Shown here: piece by piece, positions 2,061 to 49,240 of the stretch | How the letters are laid out: the number at the start of each line of letters is the position of its first letter | Numbering within the stretch: position 1 is the stretch's first letter | From: Chrysemys picta bellii | Lineage: Eukaryota | Reading direction: 5' to 3' | Assembly (NCBI RefSeq): GCF_011386835.1 | Contig: NC_088791.1 | Coordinates: 151,466,001 to 151,530,000 of the forward strand | DNA length: 64,000 nt | Translations under genes and position numbers: made by a program | The notes under the pieces: generated by a model | What the model was told of the DNA's origin: nothing | The model's database searches: none | What the model saw: only the letters and a program-made list of their open reading frames with translations

Positions 2061-3552
2061 CAGGGATTCTCAACCTTTTTCTTTCTGAGGCTCTCCCCAA
2101 CATGCTATAAAAACTCTATGGCCCATCTGTGCCACAACAACTGGTTTTCTGCATATAAAAGCCGGGGTCAGTGTTAGGGGGTAGCAAACAGGGCAGTTGC
2201 CTGGGGCCCCACACCACAGTCTCTCTTTGAAGCCACATTGCTCCGGCTTCGTAGACTCATAGACTCATAGACTTTAAGGTCAGAAGGGACCATTATGATC
2301 ATCTGGTCTGACCCCCTGCATGCTGCAGGCCACAAAACCCTTCCCTGGACTCTGCCGTTGAAGTCCCCAATCCTGTGTTTTAGTGACTTCAATCGGCAGA
2401 GACCCTCCTGCTAGCGATCCCTGCCCCATGCTGCGGAGGAAGGCGAAAAACCTCCAGAGGCTCAGCCAATTTACCCTGGAGGAAAATTCCTTCCCGACCC
2501 CAAATATGGCGATCAGTAAGACCCCGAGCATGTAGGCAAGAGTCTCTAGTCTGACCCCTGTTGGCCATTATACTATTTACGTACCATTGCTTGGTTTTCC
2601 TTGGCTACTATGTTTTACCCTTAAACCATTCCCTCCATAAACTTATCTAACTTAATCTTAAAACCAGACAGGTCCGTCGCCCCCACCGTTTCCCTCGGAA
2701 GGCCGTTCCAATATTTCACCCCTCTGACGGGACAGAAACCTTCGTCTAATTTCAAGCCTGAACTTCCCCACGGCCAGTTTATATCCATTCGTTCTCGTGT
2801 CCACATTAGTACTAAGCTGGAATAGTTCCTCTCCCTCCCTTGTATTTATCCCTCTGATGTATTTAAAGATAGCAATCATATCCCCCCTCAGCCTTCGCTT
2901 TGTCAGACTAAACAACCCAAGCTCCTCTAGTCTCCTTTCATACGACAGGTTTTCCATTCCTCTGATCATCCTAGTCGCCCTTCTCTGCACCCGTTCCAGT
3001 TTGAGTTCATCTTTTTTAAACATGGGAGACCAGAACTGCACACAGTACTCCAAATGAGGTCTCACCAGCGCCTTATACAACGGAAGCAGGACCTCCTTAT
3101 CCCTACTAGATATCCCTCGCCTAACGCATCCCAAGACCGCATTGGCTTTTTTTTACCGCCACGTCACATTGTCGACTCATAGTCATCCTGCGGTCTACAA
3201 GGACCCCTAGGTCCTTCTCCTCTTCCGTTACTTCTAACCAATGAGTCCCCATCTTGTAACTAAAATTCTTGTTAGTTATCCCCAAGTGCATCACCTTACA
3301 CTTTTCACTATTAAATTTCATCCTATTTCTGATACTCCAATTCACAAGCTCATTCAAGTCTCCCTGCAGAATATCCCTATCCTTGGCTTCAGCCCCGGGT
3401 GGCAGGGCTCAGGGCCATGGGCTTCAGCCCCATGCAGTGGGGCTTCTGATTTCTGCCCTGGGCCCCAGTGAGTCTAATGCTGGTCCTACTTGGTGGCCCA
3501 CCTGAAACCTGCTCGTGGCCCCCACTCCCGGACCTTTGGTTGAGAACCACTG
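2061..3552. mobile_element. hAT-type non-autonomous element (MITE) interrupted by a CR1
   Basis: Termini CAGGGATTCTCAACC (2061) and GGTTGAGAACCACTG (ends 3552); flanks TCTGTGCA/TCTGTGTG form a 6/8 match to an 8-bp TSD. Confidence 0.7.
2252..3382 (-). mobile_element. CR1 LINE, 5'-truncated, with RT C-terminus, 3' UTR and (TCTATGAG)n tail
   Basis: ORFs 3121-3357 and 2658-3134 (KFNSEKCKVMHLG...EKDLGVLVD; LYKALVRPHLEYCVQFWSP...ERVQRRATRMI) are CR1 ORF2; the tail reads TAGACTCATAGACTCATAGAC on the + strand. Confidence 0.95.
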
Positions 3553-5609
3553 TCTGTGTGGGGATTTAATCACAATTATGAAATCAAAACTTCCCTGCTA
3601 TAATAAGGGGCTTAGAAGAGACATGGTCCATAGTATTGTCCTAACCCTAGTCAATGCAGGTGCATGTTCTTTGCTAGGAATATAATCTGCCGTAAAAATA
3701 GTTGGTTCTATAGATATAATCTGCCCACTTTCTTTTCATTATATTTTGTCACATGGCCAATTGTTGCCATGATTGCAGCCACTGAGAAGAAATCGTTGAG
3801 AGCAAGCAAAAGAAAAAAGCACTCACTATTTGTGTCCAAGATGCTGATGCCTCTATCCAGTGATTTTTTTTCTTTTTTTTAATCCAGTTTTATGCGGTGC
3901 AGGTAGCTAACAATGCCTGAGCACAAAGGTTGGAGAGAGAAATATAATGAAGACCACACCAGAGCTGGTGCAAGATACGCTCCATTTATTCCAAAGCCAA
4001 TCCACTAATTCCTATGTAAAAGATTACTCAGTACAAGGTACAGCAGGAGTCCTATAGGCAAAATTAATATTACATATATAACAGACCTCACCTTCCTGGT
4101 ATGTCAGGGGTGTTTGGATCTAGGTTAGACTTAGACTCCTTGCTACATACAGTAGAATTGGACTAATTATTTATAATGAACAATTTTATCATTTGTTTAT
4201 TGGTGAGTTGAAGGATCAGATGTCTGTTTTTTTTTAATGATATAGAAAGTTTGAAGGGCTTTTTTATTATGGGATTTCTATAACCACTGTGGAGTTGAAT
4301 GGTCAAGTGCCATGGAACATTATGCTGATTACATGTTGTTACCAAGGAAATGTGGAATGCAAATTCTAGAAGCTCTTTTAGGGAGAAGGAACAACTTTAG
4401 CTTTTCCAAAGTGTAGGGTAGAACCCTTTGCTGAGAATGGAAGCAAAGTCCTAGGCTGCTCTAGTGAGTGGACTGAAGGGCTGAGTACCTAGCCTAAAGG
4501 GGCTGATTTGTCTTTCCTAGGGAATGAAAGGCTGTTGAAGCTGAGTGTTTCACTGTGAGCTACTGAAGGGTGACCTCTTGTACTCTTTAGGTTAAGGCTG
4601 GGTTAAGATAGCTCAAGGGTGGTCGTAGTAGCTGATATTATTATGTTGATTTAATACAAAGATGCCGAGCCAGCATTCTAAGCATATTCAACATAAATTA
4701 CCAAAACCAACTGAAACTAGCAGCTTAACTTTACCAATAGCTTCTGACAAAATTCAACTCACAACAGAACTCCTGCAAAACTCCCCACCTGCTATGCAAA
4801 CTTCAGCCCACATCACCCTTACCAAAAGCCTGAAGCTTTTCTACACACAAGTTGCACTGCTTTAGCTGTACTGATATAGTTAAAGCAGTGCCACCTCCTA
4901 ATCCGGATGCAATTCTAGCAGTACTCGTAGCTGAAATCTCATGCTGTCACATGGGTGCCAGTTGTAAAATCAAAATGGCTGAAAACTTAATTGGATGGTG
5001 ACAGACCATGATTGAACCTGGTGATACTGTATTCTAAACCAAATGCTCTCAACCATGCTTGTAGCGGTTTCCATCGCTTCACATTGACTCAGACATTCTA
5101 GGTTTCAGAGTGACACACAGACAGACGTTTCTGGAATCTTCTTATATAGATAGAGGTGATTTATACTGGTTTAGCTATTCCTAGATAGGAGAGGGAATAA
5201 GCTATCCTTGTATAAGGCACCAATGTTGGTAAGAAATCACACCCCACTCTGACATAGTTATACTGGTACAAATCTGTGTGTAGACCAGGCCATAGTAAAT
5301 ATCTGTCTATCTGCATTCTGAAGGCCAACAGCACTGGTCTATTTTGGACCAAAGTACGCTCCAGTCTCTCACAGAAAACATTCTAATATTAGTCCCAGCA
5401 CTGGAGGTCAAGCACCTCTGCTGTTAGCAACTATAGCAGAATGGCACTAAGAGACAGAGGGCACAAATAGGCAGTGCCAAAGCTATTTTGGGATTTATTC
5501 TACAGCTGGTCAAAATGGGAAAGGAATGTGGGCAAAACTCTGAAATTTGAGTTTGGACCCATTCTGGAGGGTTCTAATGGACCCATTTTTCATTTTATCA
5601 ATGAAAATC

Positions 5610-5872
5610 AAGACTCATAATTTCAATGGTATCGCCCTCTGCGGTGTGGCTGGGGGACTCACTTGCTGCCTGGCTCCCAGCTCCAGCTTCTCTGGTTGGT
5701 GGAAATTTTGACATGATGTCATCAGAAATAGGTCAGGTTGGGTATCCTTCAAAACCTCTTTCTCCCTCGAACACAGTAGTACCAAACATGACAAGCCTAG
5801 GATAATTATGCAGATCTAGATTTGATAAAATGTTTAAAAATCAACTTTTTAAAATTATACTTTAACACAGGC
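5610..5872 (+). repeat. Left terminal inverted repeat of the 5610-14635 transposon
   Basis: Aligns by eye along its length to the reverse complement of 14385-14635. Confidence 0.85.
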
Positions 5873-6166
5873 ATGTCAAACATGCAGTCCTTAAAGGTCA
5901 GTTGTGGCCCTTGACTGTCAGTGCCATGTTATCAGTTAATACTCAGAATATACCTGATTTATTTTAATGTTACAGGTGACTATGAATGGAAGGAGTGCGT
6001 TAAGCTGATTTTCATTCATCAGAAAAAAGTAGTGGTTCAATGGTATTGATTATCAGCTTTTGTTTATTATGCCAAAACAGTTGTAAGGATGCACTGGTTA
6101 AGATATCCGCATCCAGCCAGAAATTATTGCAATCTATCTGCAAATGGTGTGCCTATAGTTACATAA

Positions 6167-7325
6167 TGTAAGGGGACTGTTGTCCCCTTACTAAAATTCA
6201 GTGGGGTGTTTTGGCTGGCTAGCTCCCAGTAGCAAAAGAAAGGGGAAGGGTCAATGGGAAATCAGGGCCCTGAGACTGACAGTCCCCAGAATCAATGGGG
6301 AGAGGCCAATGCCCCAGGTCAGCCTGATTGACAGGGCAGGCAGGCTAATCAGGGAGTCAGGAGGCCAGGGGGTCCAGTCCTCCGTGTGAGCTGGAATTGC
6401 CTGGGTCAGACAGAGTGAGGCCAAGCTAAGGAGAAAGCAGGGGCCCAAGCTGTCCTGGGAGGAGAGCTGCAGCAACCAGATCCAGAGGGTCCAGAAAAGC
6501 AGCCCAGGGAGCTGGAGGCAGAGCAGCAGCAGTGCTGAGGCAGAGTGGAGCTGGAGCTGAGACAGAGTGGTGGAGCTGGAGCAGTCCGGAGCCGGATGCA
6601 GTGAGCAGCTGGGGAGAGTGAGGGGGACACTGGGCAGTGGGCCCAGCACAAGGAGACGCCTCAGCCAAGAGGCCTTGCAGGCCAGACTTGGAGGTGGATC
6701 GTAACCCCGACAGGGCGGTGGCAACGCTGGGAAAAAGGGTCCTGGCACCTCGAGCCTAAGAGCGTGTGGCCACCGCCAGAGCAAGTGTCCGACCTGCAGC
6801 GTCCCTGCAGCACCGCCAGGGCAAGAGAAGGGGTCTGGGGTGTGTGAGGAACAGACTGTGAACTTCCCTTACATTCCAAAGACACTGGTTGTGATGTCCC
6901 TGTGCCATAGAGAGGAGTTATGTGTTTTCCTTTAACCTTTCCCATTTTTTCCTTATTTTTTTTTAATTGATTGCTGTTTAATAAATTGTATTTGCTTGGA
7001 ACAATAAGTAATGTTATGATCAGTGAGTCAGGGAAGCATCCAGTGCAGAGAGAGCACCCCGGAGTGGGGACACCCTAGCCCCTGCCCTAAGTGACCACAA
7101 CAAGGTTGGAGGTTGAGTTCCCCCAGGCACCCTGTGCCCAGCCTTGCTGGGGTTACGAGGACTCTGCCACACAGGAGAGTGGAAGGGGAGCCCTTGAGGT
7201 CAGACAGGCCTCTGGGTAAAGGAAGTGGGAAACAGGACTCGGATCCTTTCGCTAGCCCACTTCACTGGGGTAGTATATAAGCCAGGAAAGTTCCCCACAA
7301 TAGTGGAACCGTTCCCCTTTTTACA
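6167..7325 (+). mobile_element. Solo LTR (Gypsy-type), ~1.16 kb
   Basis: Begins TGTAAGGGG and ends CCCCTTTTTACA; AATAAA at 6980; flanks ATAA/ATAG (imperfect 4-bp TSD). It interrupts the fossil transposase-like frame. Confidence 0.7.
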
Positions 7326-7830
7326 ATAGCATACATTACATGGCATAATTAATTACAACCCCAAAGCAATTCATTACAAAATCCTTGTTTTTACTTAAGT
7401 CTTGATCATTTTTAGACATCAGGTGGGGAGACAAAGAGTACCAACTAATAGCTGAATCTTTTTGGAGCATTCCACCGCGGAGAACCTGGTTAAACACAAT
7501 GCTCTGTGGCACCTTACACGCTACAAGAAGTGTACACATAAACTGAATTTGGCAAGGTTGGATAGAAAGTACATCCAGCACCAGGAAAACTTTGAAAATG
7601 CTGAGACAAGTGCCAGTTTTAGGTGAGACTCGCTTCATACCAGGTCTGATGGCATGTGTTTCAAGACGAACACCTGCTTCTTCTGTGGTATCCATTAAGC
7701 ACAGTTTCAACATGAGACAGGTGAGAAACTATTTGAAGCAGTCACTCTTGGAAAGAGCGTTGCATGGAAAGTAAGTGGGTGCACTGACTCAAAAGACACC
7801 CATGCATATGACATTGCATGTCACATCAAG

Positions 7831-7964
7831 GAGGTTTTTAAGGTCAGACTTGACAAAGCCCTGGTTGGGATGATTTAGTTGGGAATTGGTCCTGCTTTGA
7901 GCAGGGGATTGGACTAGATGACCTCCTGAGGTCCCTTCCAACCCTGATATTCTATGATTCTGTG
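7831..7964 (+). mobile_element. CR1 3'-end fragment with 6-bp TSD
   Basis: ...GGACTAGATGACCTCCTGAGGTCCCTTCCAACCCTGATATTCTATGATTC tail; ATCAAG duplicated at 7825-7830 and 7965-7970. Confidence 0.85.
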
Positions 7965-8208
7965 ATCAAGTGCTACGCTACAAATGTACATAATGTGTTG
8001 CATCCAAAGGTACGAGCAACAGAAACAAATTCCCATTTTACTACTGCAATCAGTGTGACTCAGCTGGAGTTCATAAATTGCCTTGCAGATGCTCAAATGG
8101 ATGGGAAAGTGGTGGTGATGGCCAATGCAGAGGCTAAGTACAGAGAAATATGTGCTTTGTAGAGGAGTGAAGAGGAACAAATGCTTAGCAGAAAGGCTCT
8201 TAAAGCAC

Positions 8209-8671
8209 TGTGACGAACTGGGACTGTTCTTGCTGTGGTCTGTGAATGCTGACAGGGGAGTATGGCTGGGATAGTCTGCATTGCGGGATGGGAGTCTGCC
8301 CGAAGGCGCATACCTGAGTGTGTAACATGAGAACCCAGGAAGGGGTTGAAGGCCAGGTGATACCTTGGCCCGGGAAACTGAACAAAGGCTGTGGGAGAGG
8401 TCGCTGAAGGCAGTGTGCTGGAAGCGGGCTGGAGAGATGGCTGGGAGACAGAGATGGCTCTGACCCCCCAAAGGGGGGTGGGCTGGGATGCCCTGGGACC
8501 CCAAGCTGGACCTAACTGAGGGGGGCCCTGTTGTCTGTGCCTGCAAGACCTGTCTTGGACTGTATTCCTGTCATCCAAATAAACCTTCTGCTTTACTGGC
8601 TGGCTGAGAGTCATGGTGAATCACAGGAAGCCGGGGGTGCAGGGCCCTGAGTCCCCCAATACTCCGTGACA
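8209..8671 (+). repeat. 5' LTR
   Basis: TGTGACGAAC...CTCCGTGACA; AATAAA at 8578. Differs from the 3' LTR at one base that I could find (GGGAGAGG vs GGGAGGGG). Confidence 0.97.
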
Positions 8672-8673
8672 AC

Positions 8674-8691
8674 TGGTGGCAGCGGCGGGAT
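8674..8691 (+). other. Primer-binding site complementary to the 3' end of tRNA-Leu (AAG/TAG type)
   Basis: TGGTGGCAGCGGCGGGAT, 2 nt after the LTR end, versus the expected TGGTGGCAGCGGTGGGAT (1 mismatch, from memory of the tRNA sequence). Confidence 0.85.
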
Positions 8692-9011
8692 CTACTGCAC
8701 CCCGTGGACGGCGCTTCCTGCAGTAAGTGACTGGGGAGCAGTAAAACGAAGGGGGATTGACGGGGACCAGGCGTGCTGAAGAGTGAGAGAGAGACGGGTA
8801 TTACCCCTGGGAGTGTGTGACCAGCGAGAAGGACTTTTGCAGTAACAGGGTCCCCCGGGGGGATCGCAGCGAGTGGTCCCAGGGGCGGAGGAGTCTGCAG
8901 CTCGACCCTGGCAGAGAGGCGGTGACCTCGAGAAGGGCTGGCACACTAGGGGTCCCCCTGGGAACTGTGGGGAGCTGTGAGCACACAGGCCGGTGAGTGG
9001 CCAGCAGGAAG

Positions 9012-10500
9012 ATGTATGCCAAGCGGCTTAAGAGCGACCTGGTGGAGCTGTGCAAGCAGAGGGGGCTGCGCAGTGGGAGGCTCACCAAAGAACAGCTCAT
9101 TGCCCGGCTGGAGGCGGAAGATCGCGCGAATGAACTGCTTCCTGTGTCTCAGGGAAGCAGCCTGGCAAATGCAGCGCAGGCACCAGTGTCTGTCCCAGCT
9201 GGGAGTGGTCAGCCGGCTGCTGAGGGCTTCCCGAGACCCCTCCTTCCTATGCCTAGGGAAAGGGTGGGGAGGAGCCCAGCAAATACCGAGGGCGCCGTGA
9301 CCCCCCCCGGCCAGCAGGGGATCCTCCCGGCGAAGCTCGCGGGCCAGCAGAGGACCCTCCCGGCGACGTTCAGCATCCGTGGAGCGGAATTGGCTGGAAT
9401 GGGAGAAAGAGCTAAAACTGAGAGAGCTGGAGGATCGTGAGCAAGAGAGACAGCGTCAGCATGAACGGGAGGAGAAAGAGAGACAGAGACAGCATGAAGA
9501 GAGACAGAGACAGCATGAACGGGAGGAGAATGAGAGACAGAGACAGCATGAAGAGAGACAGCGTCAGCATGAACTGGAACTGGCGAGACTGAGGGGCAGC
9601 GAACCCCCGGCTGCGGTGAGTGAGGGGGGACCCAGGACTGCACGGAGCTTTGATAAGTGCATCCTGGCCCCACGCAAGGAGGGGGAGGACATGGATGACT
9701 TCCTGGAGGCCTTTGAGACGGCCTGCGAACTGCACCGGGTTGATCTCGCGGACAGACTCCGGGTCCTTACCCCCTTACTGGACCCCAAAGCCGTGGCATT
9801 GTACCGCCAACTGGAAGAGGCAGAGAAAGGGGACTACGAACTATTCAAAAAGGCCCTGCTACGAGAGTTTGGGCTGACTCCTGAGATGTACCGGGAAAGG
9901 TTCCGGAGTCCGGATAAAACCCCTGAGATCTCATATCTGCAACTAGCCGTCCGCATGGAAAGATACGCCAGCAAGTGGGCTGATGAGGCCCAGACGAAGG
10001 AGGACCTGATTAAACTGCTGGTACTGGAGCAACTGTATGAGCGGTGCCCATCCGACCTGAGGCTGTGGTTGGTGGACAGAAAGCCAGAGAACCCGCGACA
10101 CGCAGGGCGGCTGGCCGATGAGTTTGTAAAGAGCCGGTGAGGGGGTGGCAGGGAGGAGCCCCAAAGGAACAGGCCCGCCGCAATGCAGAGAGAGAGTCAC
10201 CCTGGGACCTCCCAAAGGGGGAATATGGGGAATCCCCTCCCACGGGGAATGCCCAGCGTCAGGGACAACCGACCGGCTCGAGGGGACCCACGGGACATGA
10301 GCTGCTATTACTGCGGCCGAAGAGGCCACGTTCGGGCCCAGTGCCCCAAGCTCAAGGACGGACTGAACAGACCAAACCCGCACCGGGTTAACTTGGTAGA
10401 GGCCCAGACGGACGAGGGGCAGGCTTCTCACGCAAGAGGGGCTGGCAGCTTATCAACTGCTCAAGAGAGAGAAGGGCCCCAGGCCAGCTCCTCTAGGGGG
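9012..10500 (+). pseudogene. Gag: N-terminal SAP-like helix motif, E/R/Q coiled coil, SCAN/capsid domain, CCHC zinc knuckle (one frameshift, one in-frame TGA)
   Basis: ATG 9012 MYAKRLKSDLVELCKQRGLRSGRLTKEQLIARLE; shift in C8 at 9301-9308; ERQRQHE repeats; ...LIKLLVLEQLYERCPSDLRLWLVDRKPENPRHAGRLADEF (SCAN-like); TGA at 10138-10140; CYYCGRRGHVRAQC. Confidence 0.9.
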
Positions 10501-11480
10501 TTGGATGCTCCAGACTCAGGGTTTTTGGTTTATACGGTGGGCGTGGGGCTGTCCCTCCGGAGAGAGTACCTTGTTCCCCTGGAGGTGGATGGGAGGAAGG
10601 TCAATGGATACTGGGATACGGGCGCAGAGGTGACGCTGGCCCGGCCCGAGGTGGTGGCCCCAGATCAGGTGGTGCACAACACCTACCTGACCCTGACGGG
10701 GGTGGGCGGAACACCAGTCAAAGTGCCTGTGGCAAGGGTACACCTGAAGTGGGGGGCCAAGGAGGGCCCCAAGGATGTGGGGGTACACCCGTATTTGCCC
10801 ACTGAGGTATTGATGGGGGGGGGACCTGGAGGACTGGCCAAGCAACCCCCAAAGGGCACTGGTTGTGACCCGCAGTCAGAGCCGGCGAGGGGCACTGTGC
10901 CCTGGCCTTGGGGGGGGGGGTGCCTTGCCTGAGGCGCAGGACCCTAACCTGGTGGGGAGGGAACGCCCAGGGACACGGCTCAGGGAGGCTGCAGCTTCAG
11001 ACCCAGCGGGCAAGAAAGAGCAGGTGGCCATCCCTGTCCCAGCTGCTGAGTTCCAGGCCGAGTTGCAGAGAGATTCCTCCTTGCGGAAGATAAGGGACCT
11101 GGCCGACCTCAATGCGGTACAGACCATGGGACGAGGTGGCCGGAAAAGGTTCCTGTGGGAGAAGGGGTTCCTGTACCGAGAATGGGCTCCCCTAGGGAAA
11201 ATGGAGTCAGGGGGGATCAGGAGGCAGCTGGTGGTACCCCAGAAGTATCGCCGCCAGCTGCTGTGCCGGGCCCATGACATTCCCCTCTCAGGGCACCAGG
11301 GAACCTGGCGTACCCAGCAGAGGCTGCTACGGAGCTTTTACTGGCCTGGGGTCTTTGTTACTGTCCGACAGTACTGCGGATCCTGTGACCCCTGTCAGAG
11401 GGGGAGGAAGGCCTGGGACAAGGGGAAAACAGCTTTAGGACCCTGGCCCAGCATAAAGGATCCTTTCCGGAGGGTGGCCA
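10501..11480 (+). pseudogene. Aspartic protease followed directly by integrase H2C2 zinc-binding domain, truncated at the start of the catalytic core
   Basis: GYWDTGAEVT (protease active site); shift in G9 at 10815-10823; HDIPLSGHQG...FYWPG...CGSCDPC (H2C2); homology stops at PFRRVA (~11480), where the rve core would begin. Confidence 0.9.
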
Positions 11481-11794
11481 AGGTTAAAAGGGCGGCTCTA
11501 AACCAAGAGAGCCCAAAGCACAGACCTCCAGACTGGAGCGCTGGGAGAAGACCACAGCCCAGTTGGAACCCCAGAGGTATGGGGGTGGGGAAAGGGCACG
11601 GGCCGCATAAACCTTCCCACATGCGAACTGCGAGTGCCATCAAGCACCCCCGACCTAAGGGGGGGCGTGAAACTGGAGGGGCCTGGTGTAATTCTCACCA
11701 AGGAATGAGAGGGATGCGGGGGCATCCATGGGAAGGGGGTAGGTTCGAACTTCCCCGGGTCACTGGCTAAAGTGACCCTGCTCAGTTCGGTCTC

Positions 11795-11806
11795 GAAGGG
11801 GGGAGA
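11795..11806 (+). other. Polypurine tract
   Basis: GAAGGGGGGAGA immediately 5' of the 3' LTR. Confidence 0.9.
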
Positions 11807-12269
11807 TGTGACGAACTGGGACTGTTCTTGCTGTGGTCTGTGAATGCTGACAGGGGAGTATGGCTGGGATAGTCTGCATTGCGGGATGGGAGTCTGCCCG
11901 AAGGCGCATACCTGAGTGTGTAACATGAGAACCCAGGAAGGGGTTGAAGGCCAGGTGATACCTTGGCCCGGGAAACTGAACAAAGGCTGTGGGAGGGGTC
12001 GCTGAAGGCAGTGTGCTGGAAGCGGGCTGGAGAGATGGCTGGGAGACAGAGATGGCTCTGACCCCCCAAAGGGGGGTGGGCTGGGATGCCCTGGGACCCC
12101 AAGCTGGACCTAACTGAGGGGGGCCCTGTTGTCTGTGCCTGCAAGACCTGTCTTGGACTGTATTCCTGTCATCCAAATAAACCTTCTGCTTTACTGGCTG
12201 GCTGAGAGTCATGGTGAATCACAGGAAGCCGGGGGTGCAGGGCCCTGAGTCCCCCAATACTCCGTGACA
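11807..12269 (+). repeat. 3' LTR
   Basis: Near-identical direct copy of 8209-8671. Confidence 0.97.
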
Positions 12270-12784
12270 AGCACTCATTGAAGACAAACTGTGGGATATG
12301 GACATAGTTTTTAGCAATCCTCTCTGAAGAAATGAATATCCGTGCATGTCCCTAAAAGCTGCAAAAGATGTGGCACTATCAAAAGTGGAAGAAAGGGCTG
12401 ATGTCAACAGTAATATGAAGACTCTGTTCGCAGCTGCTACATTTTTAAGGAAAAGCATTTTGTCCTGCAGTACATGGAAGTTTCAGGTATCCGTAGCTGG
12501 TGCCAAATCTGAAGAAATAATGCCACGTGACCTGTACTCCTACTTTAAGTGGTGCATCGGTGGTCACAGGGACTTCAGCACCAGCAAGTATGACAATATT
12601 CAGTGGTACGATAAAATGCAAAGCCTCATGTACGGATGCTTGAATGAAAGGCAGGTCTCCAACCCATACACAACAACCATGTGGCATATGTTTAAACTAA
12701 CAGCCACTTGTAGTGATAGATTAACAATTCCATTTTTAAACCAGTAGTGAATTCCTCATGCAGCTTGCGGACAGCATCATCTCC

Positions 12785-12915
12785 TCTATCGACTATCACT
12801 TGATGATTACCTGTTCTGTTCATTCCCTCTGGGGCAGCTGGCATTGGTCATTGTCGGAAGACAGGATACTGGGCTAGATGGATCTTTGGTCTGACCCAGT
12901 ATGGCCATTCTTATG
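12785..12915 (+). mobile_element. CR1 3'-end fragment
   Basis: CTGTTCTGTTCATTCCCTCTGGGGCA...GGATACTGGGCTAGATGG...CTGACCCAGTATGGCCATTCTTATG, a CR1-type 3' UTR/tail. Confidence 0.75.
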
Positions 12916-13189
12916 ACTACAACAAAGTATTCCACCTGGAGACTGCAATATCAAATGAGGCTCTTCATACGGTTCCATAAGGTGTTCCTCCAGGCCTCAT
13001 CAAGGGTAGATTTGCATCTTGTCCTGCTGATAACTTAGATTTCATTGTGGATACAGCAGATGGCAAATATACCTAGAGAAGTTCCTTAACTCCTCTTTGG
13101 CCAGTGTGGGGGTTGTATACCCCATCACACATACTCTCAAATGATCTGGACCCCCAGGACATATTGGACCACATCCTTTTAGGAGAAAG

Positions 13190-13703
13190 CAGAGGTGAAA
13201 GTAAGCCGGTACACCCCGGTACGGTGCACCGGCAAGAGCCGGTGCGTTATACCGGGGCGGCCTGGCTTCCCCAGATGGCAATTTAAAGGGCCTGGGGCTC
13301 CCAGCAGCGGCTGGAGTCCCAGGCCCTTAAATTGCGGCCAGAGCCCCGCTGCTGGAGCCCTGGAGTAGCAGCGGGGCTTCGGGGGCTATTTAAAGGGCCG
13401 GGGCTCCCGCTGCCTCTACGGCTCCAGCCCTTTAAATAGCTGCAGGAGCCCCGCCGCCGCTACCCCAGAGCTCCGGCGGCTATTTAAAGGGTCTGGGGTG
13501 GTAGCAGCGGCTGAGCCCTTTAAACTGCTGCCGGAGCCCCTGGCTGCTGCTGCTACCCTGGTGGGGGAGGGGGAGGGCACTTACCGGTACAGGGTGGGCC
13601 AGGGCTGGCTCTGACCCCCCCCCATCCTCGCCCCTTCCAGGGGCCAGAGCTGGCCCCAACCCAGCCCCATACCGGTAAGTCCCTATTTCTACTTTCACCC
13701 CTG
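13190..13703. mobile_element. hAT MITE with perfect 8-bp TSD
   Basis: TIRs CAGAGGTGAAAGTA / TACTTTCACCCCTG; TSD GGAGAAAG at 13182-13189 and 13704-13711; internal TTTAAAGGG..GGGGCTCC repeats; CpG-rich. Confidence 0.92.
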
Positions 13704-13989
13704 GGAGAAAGGTACATTTCAACATAGTCAGCCTTTAACTTGGCACTACACGAGGTGCCAGAGCAAATGATCTGTGTATGCATCCTGCCAATCATACCAT
13801 CTTCCTGTTTTGAAGGTGCTCAGGATGGCTGAGATAGTTACTGATGTGGTCATAAATGCACTGGAAGTGTTCATGTGCTGAGTTTACCATTTTGAAGATT
13901 AATATTATGACACTTGCAGAGCTGCATTGGTGGTGGTTTTCCAAGAAGCAGACAAATGGAGAATAACTGCTGCTGACAAGGGGTGCAGT

Positions 13990-14291
13990 TATACCTGCTA
14001 TCAAGAGGGTGAATTATCAAGCAATGGAATGGCTCCAGGATGATCACACACATCCAAAACTATTCTCCCCTCTTGGGCATGCCTGGGACTTGGAGGATGG
14101 ACTGATCATACCACTTGTATGAAATACCATGGATTCCTGAATCAATCCTTCAGCTAATCAAATGCTCATGTGCAAAAACCAGGTGCTTTTCACCCTGCAA
14201 GCGTTTGGCCAGCAGCCTGCCTTGTACGGAGACGTGTGAGTGTGGCACGGATGAGGATCAGTGTAACAACGTGCCAGCAGTGGTGCCCTAG
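13990..14291 (+). pseudogene. C-terminal remnant of transposase-like protein with tesmin/TSO1-like CXC cysteine cluster
   Basis: Manual translation: IPAIKRVNYQAMEWLQDD...HAWDLEDGLIIP, one frameshift, then IPESILQLIKCSCAKTRCFSPCKRLASSLPCTETCECGTDEDQCNN (Cys cluster at 14163-14270), stop TAG at 14289-14291. Confidence 0.7.
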
Positions 14292-14384
14292 ATGCAGACA
14301 ACACTGATGATGACTGTGTTGAATACTGGTTTTCAGTCTCACGTGTCCAGGCTAACTTTGTCTCTTTTATGTGAGCAATAAATT

Positions 14385-14635
14385 CCTGTGCTGAAGTATA
14401 ATTTTAAAAAGTTGATTTTTAAACATTTTCTCAAATACATATCTACGTAAGTATTCTAGGTTTGTCATATTTGGAACCATTTTGTTCATGGGCGAGAGGG
14501 CTTTTCAATGACACCTACCTTGGCCCATTTCCAGCCACAATGTATTATCAAAATTTTCACCAACCAGGGGATCTGGGAGTCAACGAGTCCTCCTGCCATA
14601 CTGCAGAGCATGACACCATTGAAATTATGATTCTG
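14385..14635 (-). repeat. Right terminal inverted repeat of the 5610-14635 transposon
   Basis: Reverse complement matches 5610-5872 (e.g. AAAATGTTTAAAAATCAACTTTTTAAAATTATACTT, exact). Confidence 0.85.
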
Positions 14636-15919
14636 TAGTTGGTTTGTTTGTTTTTAACAAATCAAATGACCCCTCCCTTATCTTCCCATCACTAACTTGC
14701 CTAGGGAATGAGATTTTCCTGCACTGTGCTCCCAGACTATTATACGGGCTCTCCATCGCTCTAAGAGGTAATATAAGCAAAAAAAAAACTACATTCCTTT
14801 GTTTGCTTTTGTTTTAAACAATAAAATCATGGACTGGTGAGAGCTTTTAGTCAGGGCTCATGCTGCAAGAGATTGCCAGTTTCTTGCAGTCTTCCTATTC
14901 TTTTTTTCCAATCTTTTATGGCCCTTAATTGTCTATAAAGAGCTGCATTCCCCTATGGTGCTATATAAATAAAATAACTAACAACAATGCTCTTGAATTA
15001 ATTGGGTGCCTTTGCATACTGTAGTCTCTTGTAATAGCCTTTCCTCTGTACAGGCCCTTAACAACTGAGGCCTCCTGGTCCAGTTGCTGCTGATAACTCA
15101 ATGTTCTGTTGTCCACATGTGCGTAACTGATCCAATTTTGTTCCTGTGCTGCCTTCTGGATCTTCGGCGGGGGAAAATGTTTTTGGCATTAGAAGTATAT
15201 ATAAGAAAATTGCTCTTCCTCCCTCCACACACACTTTTTAAAGATCTCATTGTCGACTCCCATTAAATACTCATTCTCTTTAAAAACTCTCCCTGAGATT
15301 TTTGCTCTCTCCAGAGAGTGAAGTGCAGCATCCCTCAGCATTGACTGCTGGATGAGAGAGATGTTTGTCCGCTTGCTTCTATTGTTTGGGGTTGTCACAA
15401 TAAAACAATCCATGCCAAGGGCTTAAGCTGCTGGGCTGCTGATAATACCCCCGCCTTCTTGCACTCGGTATCTTATTCAGATGGGAAGACAACAACTCTA
15501 TTACACTCCAGGGAGGGACAGCCCCTTCTACAGTACCTTGCAGAATCACTGATTCACATGGCCTCAGAGAGCAGTTTGGTTTGTTTATTCCAGGAGCCAG
15601 TTCACACCCTTTGTCTGGCAGCCTGTTAAGACTCTGAGGAGGTTAAGTGTGTAGAATGGAGTTAGATGAATGAAGTTTAGTGTAATTCAACCAAAGTCCT
15701 AATTTCTTCTTCCCTGTGTGCAGTGATTGACGGTGTCCAGATGTAAATTGAACAGCTATGAGCACAGTCTTCAACTTGAGCCTGGGTAGCCATTTGTTCC
15801 CCATGCAGAGAAAGAGCAGGGAAGGAGGGTGGGAAGGAGAACAGTGAAGCTTGTTGTGTCTCCGTGCTGGGAGGAACAGTTGGCCTATCCCACTCATGAA
15901 AGGACAGCAGTCAAATAAT

Positions 15920-17868: not shown

Positions 17869-18199
17869 ACCTAGATCTGTTTTCTCTGTGTTAGCACGTA
17901 TGCACTCAGCTTAGAGGGACCATTGTACTTGACCTTCAGTTGGAACGACCTTGGCATGGATGATCGTTCCAATTTGATCAGCTCTTACATGGTAAGCAGG
18001 CTTGGGTATAGAAGTATTTGGATAGGAGACCCCAAGGTGCTGCAGGAAATAGTGTTAGGTCTAGTCTACACTAGAAACTTTTGCTGGTATAATAATGTCA
18101 ATTAGGGGTGGGATTTTTAATGACCTTTTTATACCAATCAAAGCTGTAATGTATATACAGCTTCTACTGGCATCACTCGAGGGATGCAGTGAGTAACAG

Positions 18200-19690
18200 T
18201 GAGGGGCCGAGCGGGGAGGAGGAGAGGAGGGACACACATGGCGAGTGTGGGGGATGAATGGGGAGAAGAAGGGAAGAGGAGGGACGCAGGTGACGAGGGG
18301 GGGAGGGGTAGAGGAGGGACGCAGGTGACGAGGGGGGGAGGGGTAGAGGACAGGAGTGGAGGGGCACCTGTAGCGAGTGAAGGTGGATGAGCAGGGAGGG
18401 GAGGAGGGGCGCACGTGGTGAGTGGGGGAGGATGAGCGGGGAGGGGAGAAGGAGAGGAGTGTATGTGGTGAGTGGGGGGGACGAGCTGGGAGGAGAGGAG
18501 AAGCACACTTGGCGAGTGGGGGGGATGAACGGGGAGGGGGGAGGAGGGATGCAGGTTGTGAGGAGGGGGATGAGCGAGGAGGGGTGCACGGGGTGAGTGG
18601 AGGGGGATGAACGAGGAGGGGCACATGGGGTGAGTGGGGAGGAGGAGAGGAGAGGACACGTGGTGAGTGGGGGGGACGAGTGGGGAGGAGGAGAGGAGGG
18701 GACACGTGGTGAGTGGGGGGGAGGAGGAGAGAAGGGGACACGCGATGAGTGGGAGGGACGAGTTAGGAGGAGGAGAGGAGGGGACACACGGTGAGTGGGG
18801 GGGATGAGCGGGGAGGGGGAGAGGAGGGATGCACATGGTGGGGGGGATGAGCAGGGAGGGGAAGAGCAGAGGTGGGCACACGTGGCGAGTGGGTGGGACG
18901 AGCGGGGAGGGGAGAGGAGAGGAGGGATGCACATGGCGACTGGGGGAGGAGGAGGAGCGCACGTGGCGAGTAGGGGGGGACGAGCGGGGAGGGGAAGAGG
19001 AGAGGAGAGGAGGGGCACATGTGGTGAGTGGGGGGGATGAGCGGGGAGGGGAAGAGTAGAGGAGGGGTGCACATGGCAAGTGGGGGGGGAGGAGGAGGAG
19101 CGCACGTGGCGAGTAGGGGGGGACGAGCGGGGAGGGGAAGAGGAGAGGAGGGGCACATGTGGTGAGTGGGGGGGGATGAGCGGGGAGGGGAAGAGTAGAG
19201 AAGGGGTGCACGTGGCAAGTGGGGGAGGAGGAGGAGCGCACGTGGCGAGTAGGGGGGACGAGCAGGGAGGGGAAGAGAAGAGGAGGGGCGCACGTGGCAC
19301 GTGCCAGGGAGGAGGCTGAGTGGAGAGGAGAGGAGTAACTGGTGAGCAGCCAGGGACCTCTGGAGCAGGGAGCCGAGTGCTGGAGAGGAGCAGCCAGGCA
19401 GCAGCGGGTGGAGGGACGAGCGGGGAGGGGAAGAGGAGAGGAGAGGAGGGGCGCACGTGGCGAGTGGGGGGAGGATGAGCAGGAAGGAGGGGAGGAGAAG
19501 GGGCGCATGTGGCGAGTAGGGGGGATGAGCAGGGAGGGGAAAAGAAGAGGAGGGGCGCACGTGGCGAGTGTCAGGGAGGAGGCTGAGTGGGGAGGAGAGG
19601 AGTAACTGATGAGCAGCTGGGGACCTCTGGAGCAGGGGGCCGAGTGCTGGAGAGGAGCAGCCGGGCAGCGGTGGGCGGAGAACGCTGAGC
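18200..19690. repeat. G/A-rich minisatellite (~30-50-bp units, higher-order structure) with recurrent CACGTG/CACATG
   Basis: Units such as GGGGCGCACGTGGCGAGTGGGGGGGACGAGCGGGGAGGGGAGAGGAGAGGA; + strand almost all purine; a ~110-bp spacer is duplicated at ~19310-19420 and ~19577-19685. Confidence 0.9.
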
Positions 19691-22039
19691 TTTTCTATGC
19701 GCCAGGCAGGTTTCCCGGCAGCTGCGCAGGCAGTAATCTCCCTGGGGGGGCCCAAGGGACCCAGGAAGCTGAGTAGCAGATGCCACCTCCTCAGTCACCT
19801 GGGAACCTGCATGGCACATAATAAATAAGTAAAAACTTCTAGCAGAAGCTCATTCCCAGCAGGGAGGGGAGAGGCAGGGCCACTACGGTACAGGTGTCCG
19901 GTGGCAGAGTCGGCAGTGGCTGCCCCAGAGGAGGCTTAGCCTCTCCTAGCCTATTCTACCTGCCACCCATGTCTCTCCACTGTCTTCCTCTCCTACTTTC
20001 CTTCCCTCTATCTTCTCTCTAGAGGCCTGATTTACAGCTCATTGAAGTCAAGGGGATGTCAGTGGATTTTGGATCTGGCCTTTGTTTCTCTTCTTGTGCT
20101 CCCCTCCCTGAAATGTCAGAGGACATAGGACCACTAGGTCTGAAATTCTGCCAACTCTGATTATGCCCTGCACTCACAGGGTCACCACACTGGTGCCTCT
20201 GATCCATTCCCCACTCCCTCCCGCATCCCACGTCACTCTTACAATGGGTCTCATTCTCTCCCCACTCAGATGGGGCTCCAGTTTTTCCCTATTCTTTGGG
20301 AGCAGGATGGCGGCGGTAGTGTGAGTATCACCGTAAGGCAGTGCAGGAGTGGTCCCGTGGCCTAGGCCCCCAGTGAGCGGTGCTTTTGCACCAGGGGACA
20401 GCTTGATTAATTGTGGGACTCTCCCGGGTGGTTCAGGTCACTCGTAAGCCATTCATCACAATCACCAATCAGAATCACCGGGCCATGGGATTAGCTAAAA
20501 GGGATTGCTCCCTTTTTCCCACAGGTTCCAGCCTATCCTAGGGCTAGTGAAGACCCACTGGTGGATTGACCTTTAATTTCCCTAGGTTGAGACAAACAAT
20601 TGTCAGAAAAATAAGGCACCGGGAGCTAAAGTGACTCTTCCAAGATCACCAGCAGAGCTAGGAACAGAACACAGGTCTTCCGTGTCCTACAGTAGTGCAC
20701 TCTTCTCCCACTCACATACACACTCCTCCTAGTCCCCCCAGCTTGTCAACCCTTTAGGGTACCGATGCCAAAGTTGTCACTCAGGTAACTCTCAAGTACA
20801 CCCAAGAATACAGTCAGATGAGGAGAAAGCATCCATTGGCCAGAGCAAAACACCCAGGAGAATCCAGTCAAATAACCAATGGGAAATCATCTACTATCCT
20901 ATTGCTCTCTCTTTTGATTGCTGGATGCTGCTCACTGTTTACTGTTGGCCCAGGCTATGGTCCATAGGCCAATACCTGCCTGGGAACAGGGCTGCAAATG
21001 GGGTGAAACAGAGAAAGGAAACGCTGCTGAAGGCCCATGCAAACCCTTGGTGCGGTGTTTGATAGCCTTCTGGGATACGAGTCATAAATCCAATGAAGAA
21101 TGAATGATAGAGCTCCTCAGTAAGTGGAATGGATGGAAGTCAGGGCCCCTGGGACGAAGGAGCGATTGTCACAATTCCTAGATTAGTAGAAAGTGAGGGG
21201 TGGTAAATAATTCTGTATCCTTATTTTATGGGTGGGGAAAGAGGTATAAGAGATTTTGACTTTACCCAGTTCACAGAAGCAGCTTGGGATTAATTTTATT
21301 ACCCCTCCCCTCATCCTCCCCTTTTCTTCTCCCCTATTATAGGCTACATCATTCTTTGTCTTCAATAAGATTGTAAGCTCTTCTTATGTTTTGTACAGCA
21401 TCTGGGGTGTTACCAGAGTATAATATTATTATAGTCAATTACTGTTATTATGGCAGATCAAGAAATAGGCACCAGGAGTCCTATACTTTAACCTTAAGAT
21501 CATCCTTTCTCCAATAAATTATGTACAAGAGAGAATATTTACCCCCAAAATAAATTATATGAAGATTGCACAGGTAAGCACTCAAAAGTCAGGAAATGCC
21601 CAGGTTAAAGTTGCCCATGCCTACAATTGTGATATAGTGTGTAATTACATCATTACTGTATTGTTCAACTAATACAACAGAATGTCATTGAATATTTTCT
21701 TCTACAGCCTTAAATGTATGTGTTGTATCGTTTCTGATTGTCTAGTACTCTGTGTGGGAGAGAGTTTGGGTGGTCTAGTGGATCAGTACAGGCCAGGGAC
21801 TCAGATAACCTGTACTCTATTCCTAGCTCTTTTGGCAGATCGCATCATCTCTCCCACAGTTTTAATTCCAAGCTCTTCAGACCAGGCACCATCTCTCACT
21901 ATCCATTTGTACAGTACCTAGCACAACGAGGCCCCGTTCTCAGATGAGGCCTGTAGACACAACTGCAATACAAATCGGTAACAATAACAGTGGGCGAAAT
22001 GTATATACCTAGTGCATAATCAATGAGGGGAAAAGGCAC

Positions 22040-49069: not shown

Positions 49070-49240
49070 TAGCTCAGTGGTTTGAGCATTGGCCTACTAA
49101 ACCCAGGATTGTGAGTTTAATCCTTGAGGGGGCCATTTAGGGAACTGGCATAAAAATCTGTCTGGGGATTGGTCCTGCTTTGAGCAGGGGGTTGGACTAG
49201 ATGACCTCCTGAGGTCCCTTCCAACCCTGATATTCTATGA
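49070..49240 (+). mobile_element. tRNA-derived SINE with CR1-type tail (turtle polIII/SINE-like)
   Basis: A-box TAGCTCAGTGG and B-box-like GAGTTTAATCC in the head; the 3' ~85 bp is nearly identical to the CR1 tail at 7880-7960. Confidence 0.85.

Follow-up and report, generated by a model that had tools for sequence, protein, structure and literature searches.

The question raised by the first part of this locus of Chrysemys picta bellii, a 64,000-nucleotide stretch of NC_088791.1 (positions 151,466,001–151,530,000, hereafter the window), is whether two long inverted repeats about 9 kb apart and the scattered coding remnants between them belong to one mobile element and, if so, to which superfamily. 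A sequence-only reading had proposed a single fossil DNA transposon with terminal inverted repeats (TIRs), hidden by nested inserts. This proposal holds. Five younger insertions take up about 6 kb of the 9-kb span, and positions 5611–14739 very probably represent a single copy, ancient and dead, of a cut-and-paste DNA transposon belonging to the AcademX lineage within the Academ superfamily.

Evidence for unity comes from the protein relics. A profile of 1582 positions was built from 17 full-length relatives, and all stop-free pieces of the window, on both strands, were searched with it one by one, with no joined protein being used. Eleven pieces matched, all on the + strand and in strict order, with E values down to 2e-22, and there were zero matches among the stop-free pieces of the − strand. 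Each of the + strand peptides that the sequence-only reading had listed falls among these 11 pieces, and they do represent one protein family as it had supposed. A tblastn comparison of the 1636-residue relative P0020 with the window likewise returned a single ordered + strand path (Table 1). The match begins with an N-terminal relic bearing a CLLCQ motif that is also present at the N-terminus of P0020, and proceeds through the NALWH..KKC piece (profile 62–110 at 7456–7623), the CFFC piece (profile 121–137) and the split YDIACHIK/CYA pieces (profile 153–255) to the longest open piece, of 139 residues (12328–12744, profile 289–412), which gives the lowest E value, 2e-22. The ADNLDF piece (matched at 12981–13073) is the last before an internal deletion, beyond which lie the RVNYQAMEW piece (profile 1466–1510 at 13967–14119, E 5e-9) and, as also read from the sequence, a terminal CXC cluster (profile 1514–1567 at 14106–14288, E 3e-14). 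Pfam returned nothing significant for ten of the window pieces, and an ESM Atlas search with the 139-residue piece was uninformative.

Profile positions from about 503 to 1400, i.e. some 900 residues from the middle of the protein, are missing from the window copy, which is therefore internally deleted. The second Asp and the Glu of the predicted catalytic triad, nearly all of the nuclease and the region that matches DUF6589 in relatives fall within the deleted part. With two of three catalytic residues and almost the entire nuclease gone, and with many stops and frameshifts in what is left, the window copy is inert and could never have moved by itself.

The inverted repeat was likewise confirmed. 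A repeat search found two pairs of arms, 5725–5874 with 14382–14531 (150 nt) and 5611–5660 with 14585–14634 (50 nt), which gapped alignment united into one repeat of about 265 bp with a single 14-bp indel; 5611–5877 pairs with 14634–14383 at 76% identity over 253 aligned sites (Kimura two-parameter distance, K2P, 0.29). The exact 36-bp and 16-bp blocks noticed in the sequence-only reading are present within this alignment, and the arm pair is recovered by BLASTN at E 9e-43. Its terminal 18-mer occurs at two sites in the window, both in the arms, and BLASTN found neither a further copy of an arm nor a second copy of the element in the window.

The arms are thus as first described, but the limits of 5610 and 14635 placed around them are not those of the element. 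The family terminal motif TAGTCTGGGAGCA occurs on the − strand at 14727–14739, its sole match without mismatch in the window, as does the sub-lineage motif TAGTCYGGGAGCA, which has its single mismatch-free occurrence at the same position and on the same strand. Because this exact motif sits at 14727–14739, the right terminus is placed at 14739, the flank beyond it beginning TTA. Contigs derived from other copies reach 14685 and 14721, and from 14758 onward the single-copy locus alone is represented, the multi-copy signal being lost by this point because the element has ended at 14739. No inverted or terminal counterpart of 14635–14739 was found to the left of 5611 (3000–5615 searched, nothing above shuffles). 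The outer part of the left end, of about 105 bp and the expected carrier of the terminal TAGTC, is missing; position 5611 is a truncation point and not a terminus.

We searched for relatives of the 139-residue piece with HMMER among 1.84 billion representative proteins, which yielded 65 matches (best E 1e-37), several of them 1100–1640 residues long. The best match (P0001, Chelonia mydas EMP33669.1, 181 residues) is 79% identical; although annotated in the green sea turtle as a ‘hypothetical protein’, EMP33669.1 is no gene but a fossilized piece of a transposon of this family. About 25 further relatives came from a word search with P0062, most of them unnamed proteins of Logan, ENA and JGI assemblies and one a Holothuria protein. 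The relatives are mostly from aquatic invertebrates or environmental samples, with clusters from Holothuria, Mollusca and Cnidaria, in line with the earlier impression that the fossil is kin to large transposase-like proteins of such animals, and the Holothuria homologue carries the UniRef name Tesmin/TSO1-like CXC protein. The nearest proteins from outside turtles are 30–42% identical.

In its full form the family protein is a single chain of about 1600 residues comprising a DDE core, a 5′ nuclease and a C-terminal CXC cluster. DUF6589 (PF20231) is reached by nine of the 17 full-length relatives (best E 5.5e-10; gathering score 27 bits) and is present in the precomputed annotation of several relatives. 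The CXC family (PF03638), the one other Pfam family seen, is matched at sub-threshold scores by ten of the 17 (best E 0.0017), the window piece scoring 12.6 bits (E 0.18) against a gathering score of 23.5 bits. Neither a THAP nor a BED domain of Pfam was matched in family members. A phmmer search of the Protein Data Bank (PDB) with P0020 gave no match, and the family profile found there only Exo1, at E 0.8. Two of the relatives, P0025 and P0066 (NCBI MES9880238.1 and MES9880239.1), form a transposase-nuclease split over two open reading frames (ORFs) on a 6-kb contig of a Sedimenticola sp. bacterial metagenome-assembled genome (MAG); most likely this contig stems from an invertebrate host and was binned with the MAG.

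The sequence-only reading had suggested looking for a DDE fold, and structure prediction for relatives supports the presence of one. An AlphaFold model of the core from P0037 (mean predicted local distance difference test score, pLDDT, 82.5; predicted template modelling score, pTM, 0.84) has its strands and helices in RNase-H order. An invariant DNxDF motif lies on strand 1, an invariant Asp comes after strand 4, and a helix behind an all-helical insertion of about 200 residues carries an invariant Glu. D487, N488 and D490 are invariant across the family, and D487, D668 and E920 (P0062 numbering) are the candidate DDE triad. When the model was compared with 48,161 chains using VIA-align, the highest score went to the P element transposase (Z 10.2, over 369 residues), followed by Hermes (Z 8.3) and then by retroviral integrases and Tn5 (Z 7–8). 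Foldseek returned no match to the core model at E ≤ 0.001, its weak list being led by RAG1, Hermes and the P element. For the C-terminal model (P0066, pLDDT 82.1), Foldseek gave a probability of 1.0 to Exo1, XRN1/2, T4 RNase H, T5 FEN and Rad2, with E 1e-5 for the C-terminal 300 residues, and D34, D172, D196, D198 and D254 of P0066 are invariant. From these fold matches and invariant acidic residues, the family protein is predicted to combine a DDE transposase and a 5′ nuclease of the flap type in one fusion.

The ends that are lost or decayed in the window copy can be read in relatives that are intact. Metagenome contigs, when scanned, yielded 521 loci encoding relatives, of which intact ones are 5.5–7 kb long, with TIRs of 80–530 bp where there is room on both sides; on alignment of the outer flanks the inverted repeat picks up again past a short indel. 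A conserved 5′-TAGTC(C/A) end is observed in L002, L004, L009, L030, L036, L044, L057 and L075, and the terminal motif of the window copy is common to the termini of L002, L004 and L068. Next to these termini, a perfect 3-bp target-site duplication (TSD) is present in four of the seven relatives with both ends readable (L004, CAC; L009, TGT; L044, ATT; L057, TAT); at any one locus three bases would match by chance with a probability of 1 in 64. The ends of L002 are flanked by ATTA/ATGA, and L036 and L075 are without a TSD. L004 combines its perfect TSD with 96% TIR identity. Beside the full-length element in L005 there is a short inverted-repeat element of about 690 bp (L005:5269–5954), the arms of which hold a subterminal AAAGTCCCGTGGGAATTT also found in the L002 TIR; from this shared sequence it is probably a derivative of the family resembling a miniature inverted-repeat transposable element (MITE).

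The Academ superfamily is said to go back to Kapitonov and Jurka in 2010, and Kojima, in Mob DNA 11:15 (2020), reportedly described Academ families with a single protein comprising a transposase and an XPG nuclease. Among the eukaryotic superfamilies described so far, Academ is to our knowledge alone in having an XPG-type nuclease together with a DDE transposase, and we know of no biochemical or structural study of Academ transposases. AcademX elements encode a nuclease and have 3–4-bp TSDs, unlike the helicase-encoding AcademH (PMC10045372), and Academ is known from animals, rust fungi and Mucoromycota (PMC5751038, PMC10799480). The 3-bp TSD of the family fits this description of AcademX (PMC10045372), and its DUF6589-like clusters, from Mollusca, Cnidaria, Basidiomycota and Mucoromycota, parallel the reported range of Academ (PMC5751038, PMC10799480), which, with no other superfamily known to us to have the combined architecture, makes it unlikely that the family is a separate, unnamed superfamily sharing only the layout of DDE core and flap nuclease (and the 3-bp TSD) with Academ; that reading draws on the core having only DUF6589 as its Pfam name, on the sole literature mention of DUF6589 that we found being without a link to transposons, and on the comparison behind the Academ label, which does not include curated Academ sequences.

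Several points weigh against assigning the window copy to Academ. Membership is judged from protein layout, the length of the TSD and the range of taxa, set against descriptions of Academ; three of the seven readable relatives lack a clean 3-bp TSD; in the window copy itself neither the left terminus nor a TSD can be read, the latter because the left end is truncated; and what the nuclease and the CXC cluster do in transposition is inferred. In the mechanism that this anatomy suggests, the N-terminal Cys/His motifs and/or the CXC cluster would bind DNA at the long TIRs, the DDE core would cleave at the TAGTC termini and join the ends to the target with a 3-bp stagger, and the fused flap nuclease would probably trim flaps or ends during excision or repair.

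As we read it, the family belongs to a known superfamily, and the window locus is an ordinary genomic fossil, a neutral relic of little weight for the turtle. What is gained is that some 3 kb of sequence with no other explanation can be annotated correctly, along with a protein profile and a terminal motif that can be reused for Academ relics in reptile genomes, a transposase connection for DUF6589, until now an orphan in Pfam, and a structural picture for Academ transposases, with a P/hAT-like DDE core and a flap nuclease. We tentatively raise the possibility that the family is an Academ lineage with an anatomy as yet unwritten, consisting of a P-element-like DUF6589 DDE core, a FEN-type nuclease, a CXC cluster, TIRs several hundred bp long and a TAGTCYGGGAGCA terminus that is conserved from turtle fossils to living elements of marine invertebrates, at a protein identity of only about 30–40%. 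In that case DUF6589 could receive the annotation of Academ transposase, and intact metagenomic copies (e.g. L004) would be candidates for the first active Academ element to study.

The turtle family is old. Paralogous contigs are 82–85% identical to the window copy, and the contig depth summed for the parts that belong to the element itself is about 10–90 times that of the flank (to be read as an order of magnitude only); the family is therefore old, with tens of copies. Contigs from at least three other organism labels span the right end together with its flank at about 98.3–98.6% identity, the same as for the flank alone, implying that the insertion is shared and is under no extra constraint. 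The sequence-only reading had entertained acquisition of the family from elsewhere. Transfer from an aquatic invertebrate might be suggested by relatives that are overwhelmingly invertebrate or environmental, and by the terminal 13-mer, which recurs in the metagenomic elements L002 and L017; the conserved terminus may, however, simply be the site of transposase binding and cleavage. No sign of recent acquisition was seen, with turtle copies only 82–85% alike, arms at the divergence given above and the nearest non-turtle proteins only 30–42% identical, and since an Academ protein fossil found in turtle has been dated to amniotes (Frith 2022; PMC9004415), vertical descent is enough. We accordingly regard horizontal transfer as improbable.

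Two further readings have next to no standing. The sequence-only guess of the CMC group (EnSpm/CACTA or Chapaev), in favour of which there is only a similarly short TSD, is contradicted by domain content (Pfam Transposase_21, 23 and 24 match no family member, and a fused flap nuclease is no CMC feature), by termini that are TAGTC and not CACTA-like, and by a predicted fold closest to those of the P element and hAT. It is just as hard to believe that the arms are independent short MITE insertions enclosing unrelated chance ORFs: for all that the arms are just 76% alike and no TSD is visible, the 11 ordered one-strand matches to one protein family contradict it, no other copy of an arm is present in the window, and the arms lie, as the TIRs do in intact relatives, beyond the two ends of the coding region.

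The five nested repeats interrupt the element at points that account for the broken peptides (Table 1). The unclassified insert splits the N-terminal relic, the profile leaping from 47 to 62 across it. The peptides HIK/CYA and LKAL/IEDKL are split because the first CR1-type tail and the long terminal repeat (LTR) retroelement, respectively, inserted there. A further CR1-type 3′ tail at 49163–49240 is 97% identical to nested positions 7880–7957, which on sequence identity indicates a fairly recent CR1 subfamily. The retroelement is very young; its LTRs, each of 464 bp, are 99.8% alike with one mismatch, and its TSD is of 5 bp; it has gag-like and protease-like ORFs and is without a long reverse transcriptase or integrase ORF. 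At the second CR1-type tail, contig depth is in the millions, and thousands of contigs stop at 12913–12916 or diverge before 12795. The high-copy repeat sits at the internal deletion junction, with a contig depth of 6,000–32,000 (run X15). Inside this very high-copy repeat, 13277–13558 is a nested palindrome cluster of GGGCCCTTTAAAT-like units, its contig depth being thousands of times that of the flank. Elsewhere in the window, 18001–20000 is a G+C-rich, strongly skewed block (GC 0.63, GC skew +0.56, AT skew +0.32), conspicuous against the remaining sequence.

Table 1. Parts of the fossil element and of the repeats nested in it, in window coordinates (aa, amino acids; LINE, long interspersed nuclear element)
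Feature	Position	Strand	Basis or remark
Left inverted-repeat arm, inner part of left end	5611-5877	+	repeat search, gapped alignment, BLASTN
N-terminus relic, CLLCQ Cys motif, profile 15-47	6004-6168	+	profile E 0.002, in order
Unclassified insert, TG...CA ends (solo-LTR-like)	6167-7325		sequence reading; boundaries approximate
Coding relics NALWH..KKC, CFFC, YDIACHIK, profile 62-194	7456-7830	+	two frames, stops
P0020 aa 66-217	7459-7872	+	tblastn
CR1-type LINE 3′ tail	7831-7964	+	direct repeat ATCAAG at 7825-7830, 7965-7970
P0020 aa 199-292	7968-8210	+	tblastn
Coding relic CYATNV... to ...LKAL, profile about 197-290	7971-8208	+	tblastn, profile
Young LTR retroelement	8209-12269	+	LTRs 8209-8672 and 11807-12270, TSD AGCAC
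P0020 aa 290-450	12268-12729	+	tblastn
Coding relic, profile about 289-440	12270-12794	+	HMMER, profile
Second CR1-type LINE 3′ tail	12795-12915	+	flanked by (G)ACT
P0020 aa 467-527	12903-13073	+	tblastn
Coding relic ADNLDF..DTADGK, predicted first catalytic Asp strand of DDE core, profile 473-502	12916-13073	+	
High-copy repeat with internal palindromes	13190-13704		left boundary uncertain (13100-13190)
C-terminus relics: end of nuclease region (RVNYQAMEW, GW) and CXC cluster, profile 1440-1567	13856-14288	+	then stop
P0020 aa 1485-1561, after jump from aa 527	13895-14119	+	tblastn
P0020 aa 1568-1612	14136-14270	+	tblastn
Right inverted-repeat arm matching 5611-5877	14383-14634	-	repeat search, gapped alignment, BLASTN
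Right terminal segment	14635-14739	-	terminal motif and contig depth

Among known systems, the element most resembles AcademX. As in that lineage, one large protein combines a DDE transposase with an XPG/FEN-type nuclease (an architecture seen in the full-length relatives of the fossil), TIRs are present in the window copy and its relatives, the 3-bp TSD of the relatives lies within the reported 3–4 bp (PMC10045372), and the family is spread over diverse animals with fungal kin; no differing trait emerged from the comparison, which was made by description and not with curated Academ sequences. With the P element (PDB 6p5a) and Hermes (PDB 8edg) the family shares a predicted RNase-H DDE fold with a large all-helical insertion, at a sequence identity of only about 10% in the core. 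In contrast to P elements and hAT, which have 8-bp TSDs, the family has a 3-bp TSD, no detected THAP or BED domain, an additional fused flap nuclease, and GxxH (G693 and H696 invariant) in place of their C/DxxH signature; by its TSD length, the THAP/BED result and the GxxH motif it falls outside both groups, which it resembles in fold alone. The predicted C-terminal fold is like that of FEN1, XPG, Exo1 and XRN, with invariant acidic residues, although similarity to the cellular 5′ nucleases is marginal in sequence (E 0.8), and in the family the nuclease comes after the transposase in one fused chain, with the CXC cluster behind it. This cluster has a cysteine spacing similar to that of the Tesmin/TSO1 CXC domain (PF03638), to which the family matches are sub-threshold.

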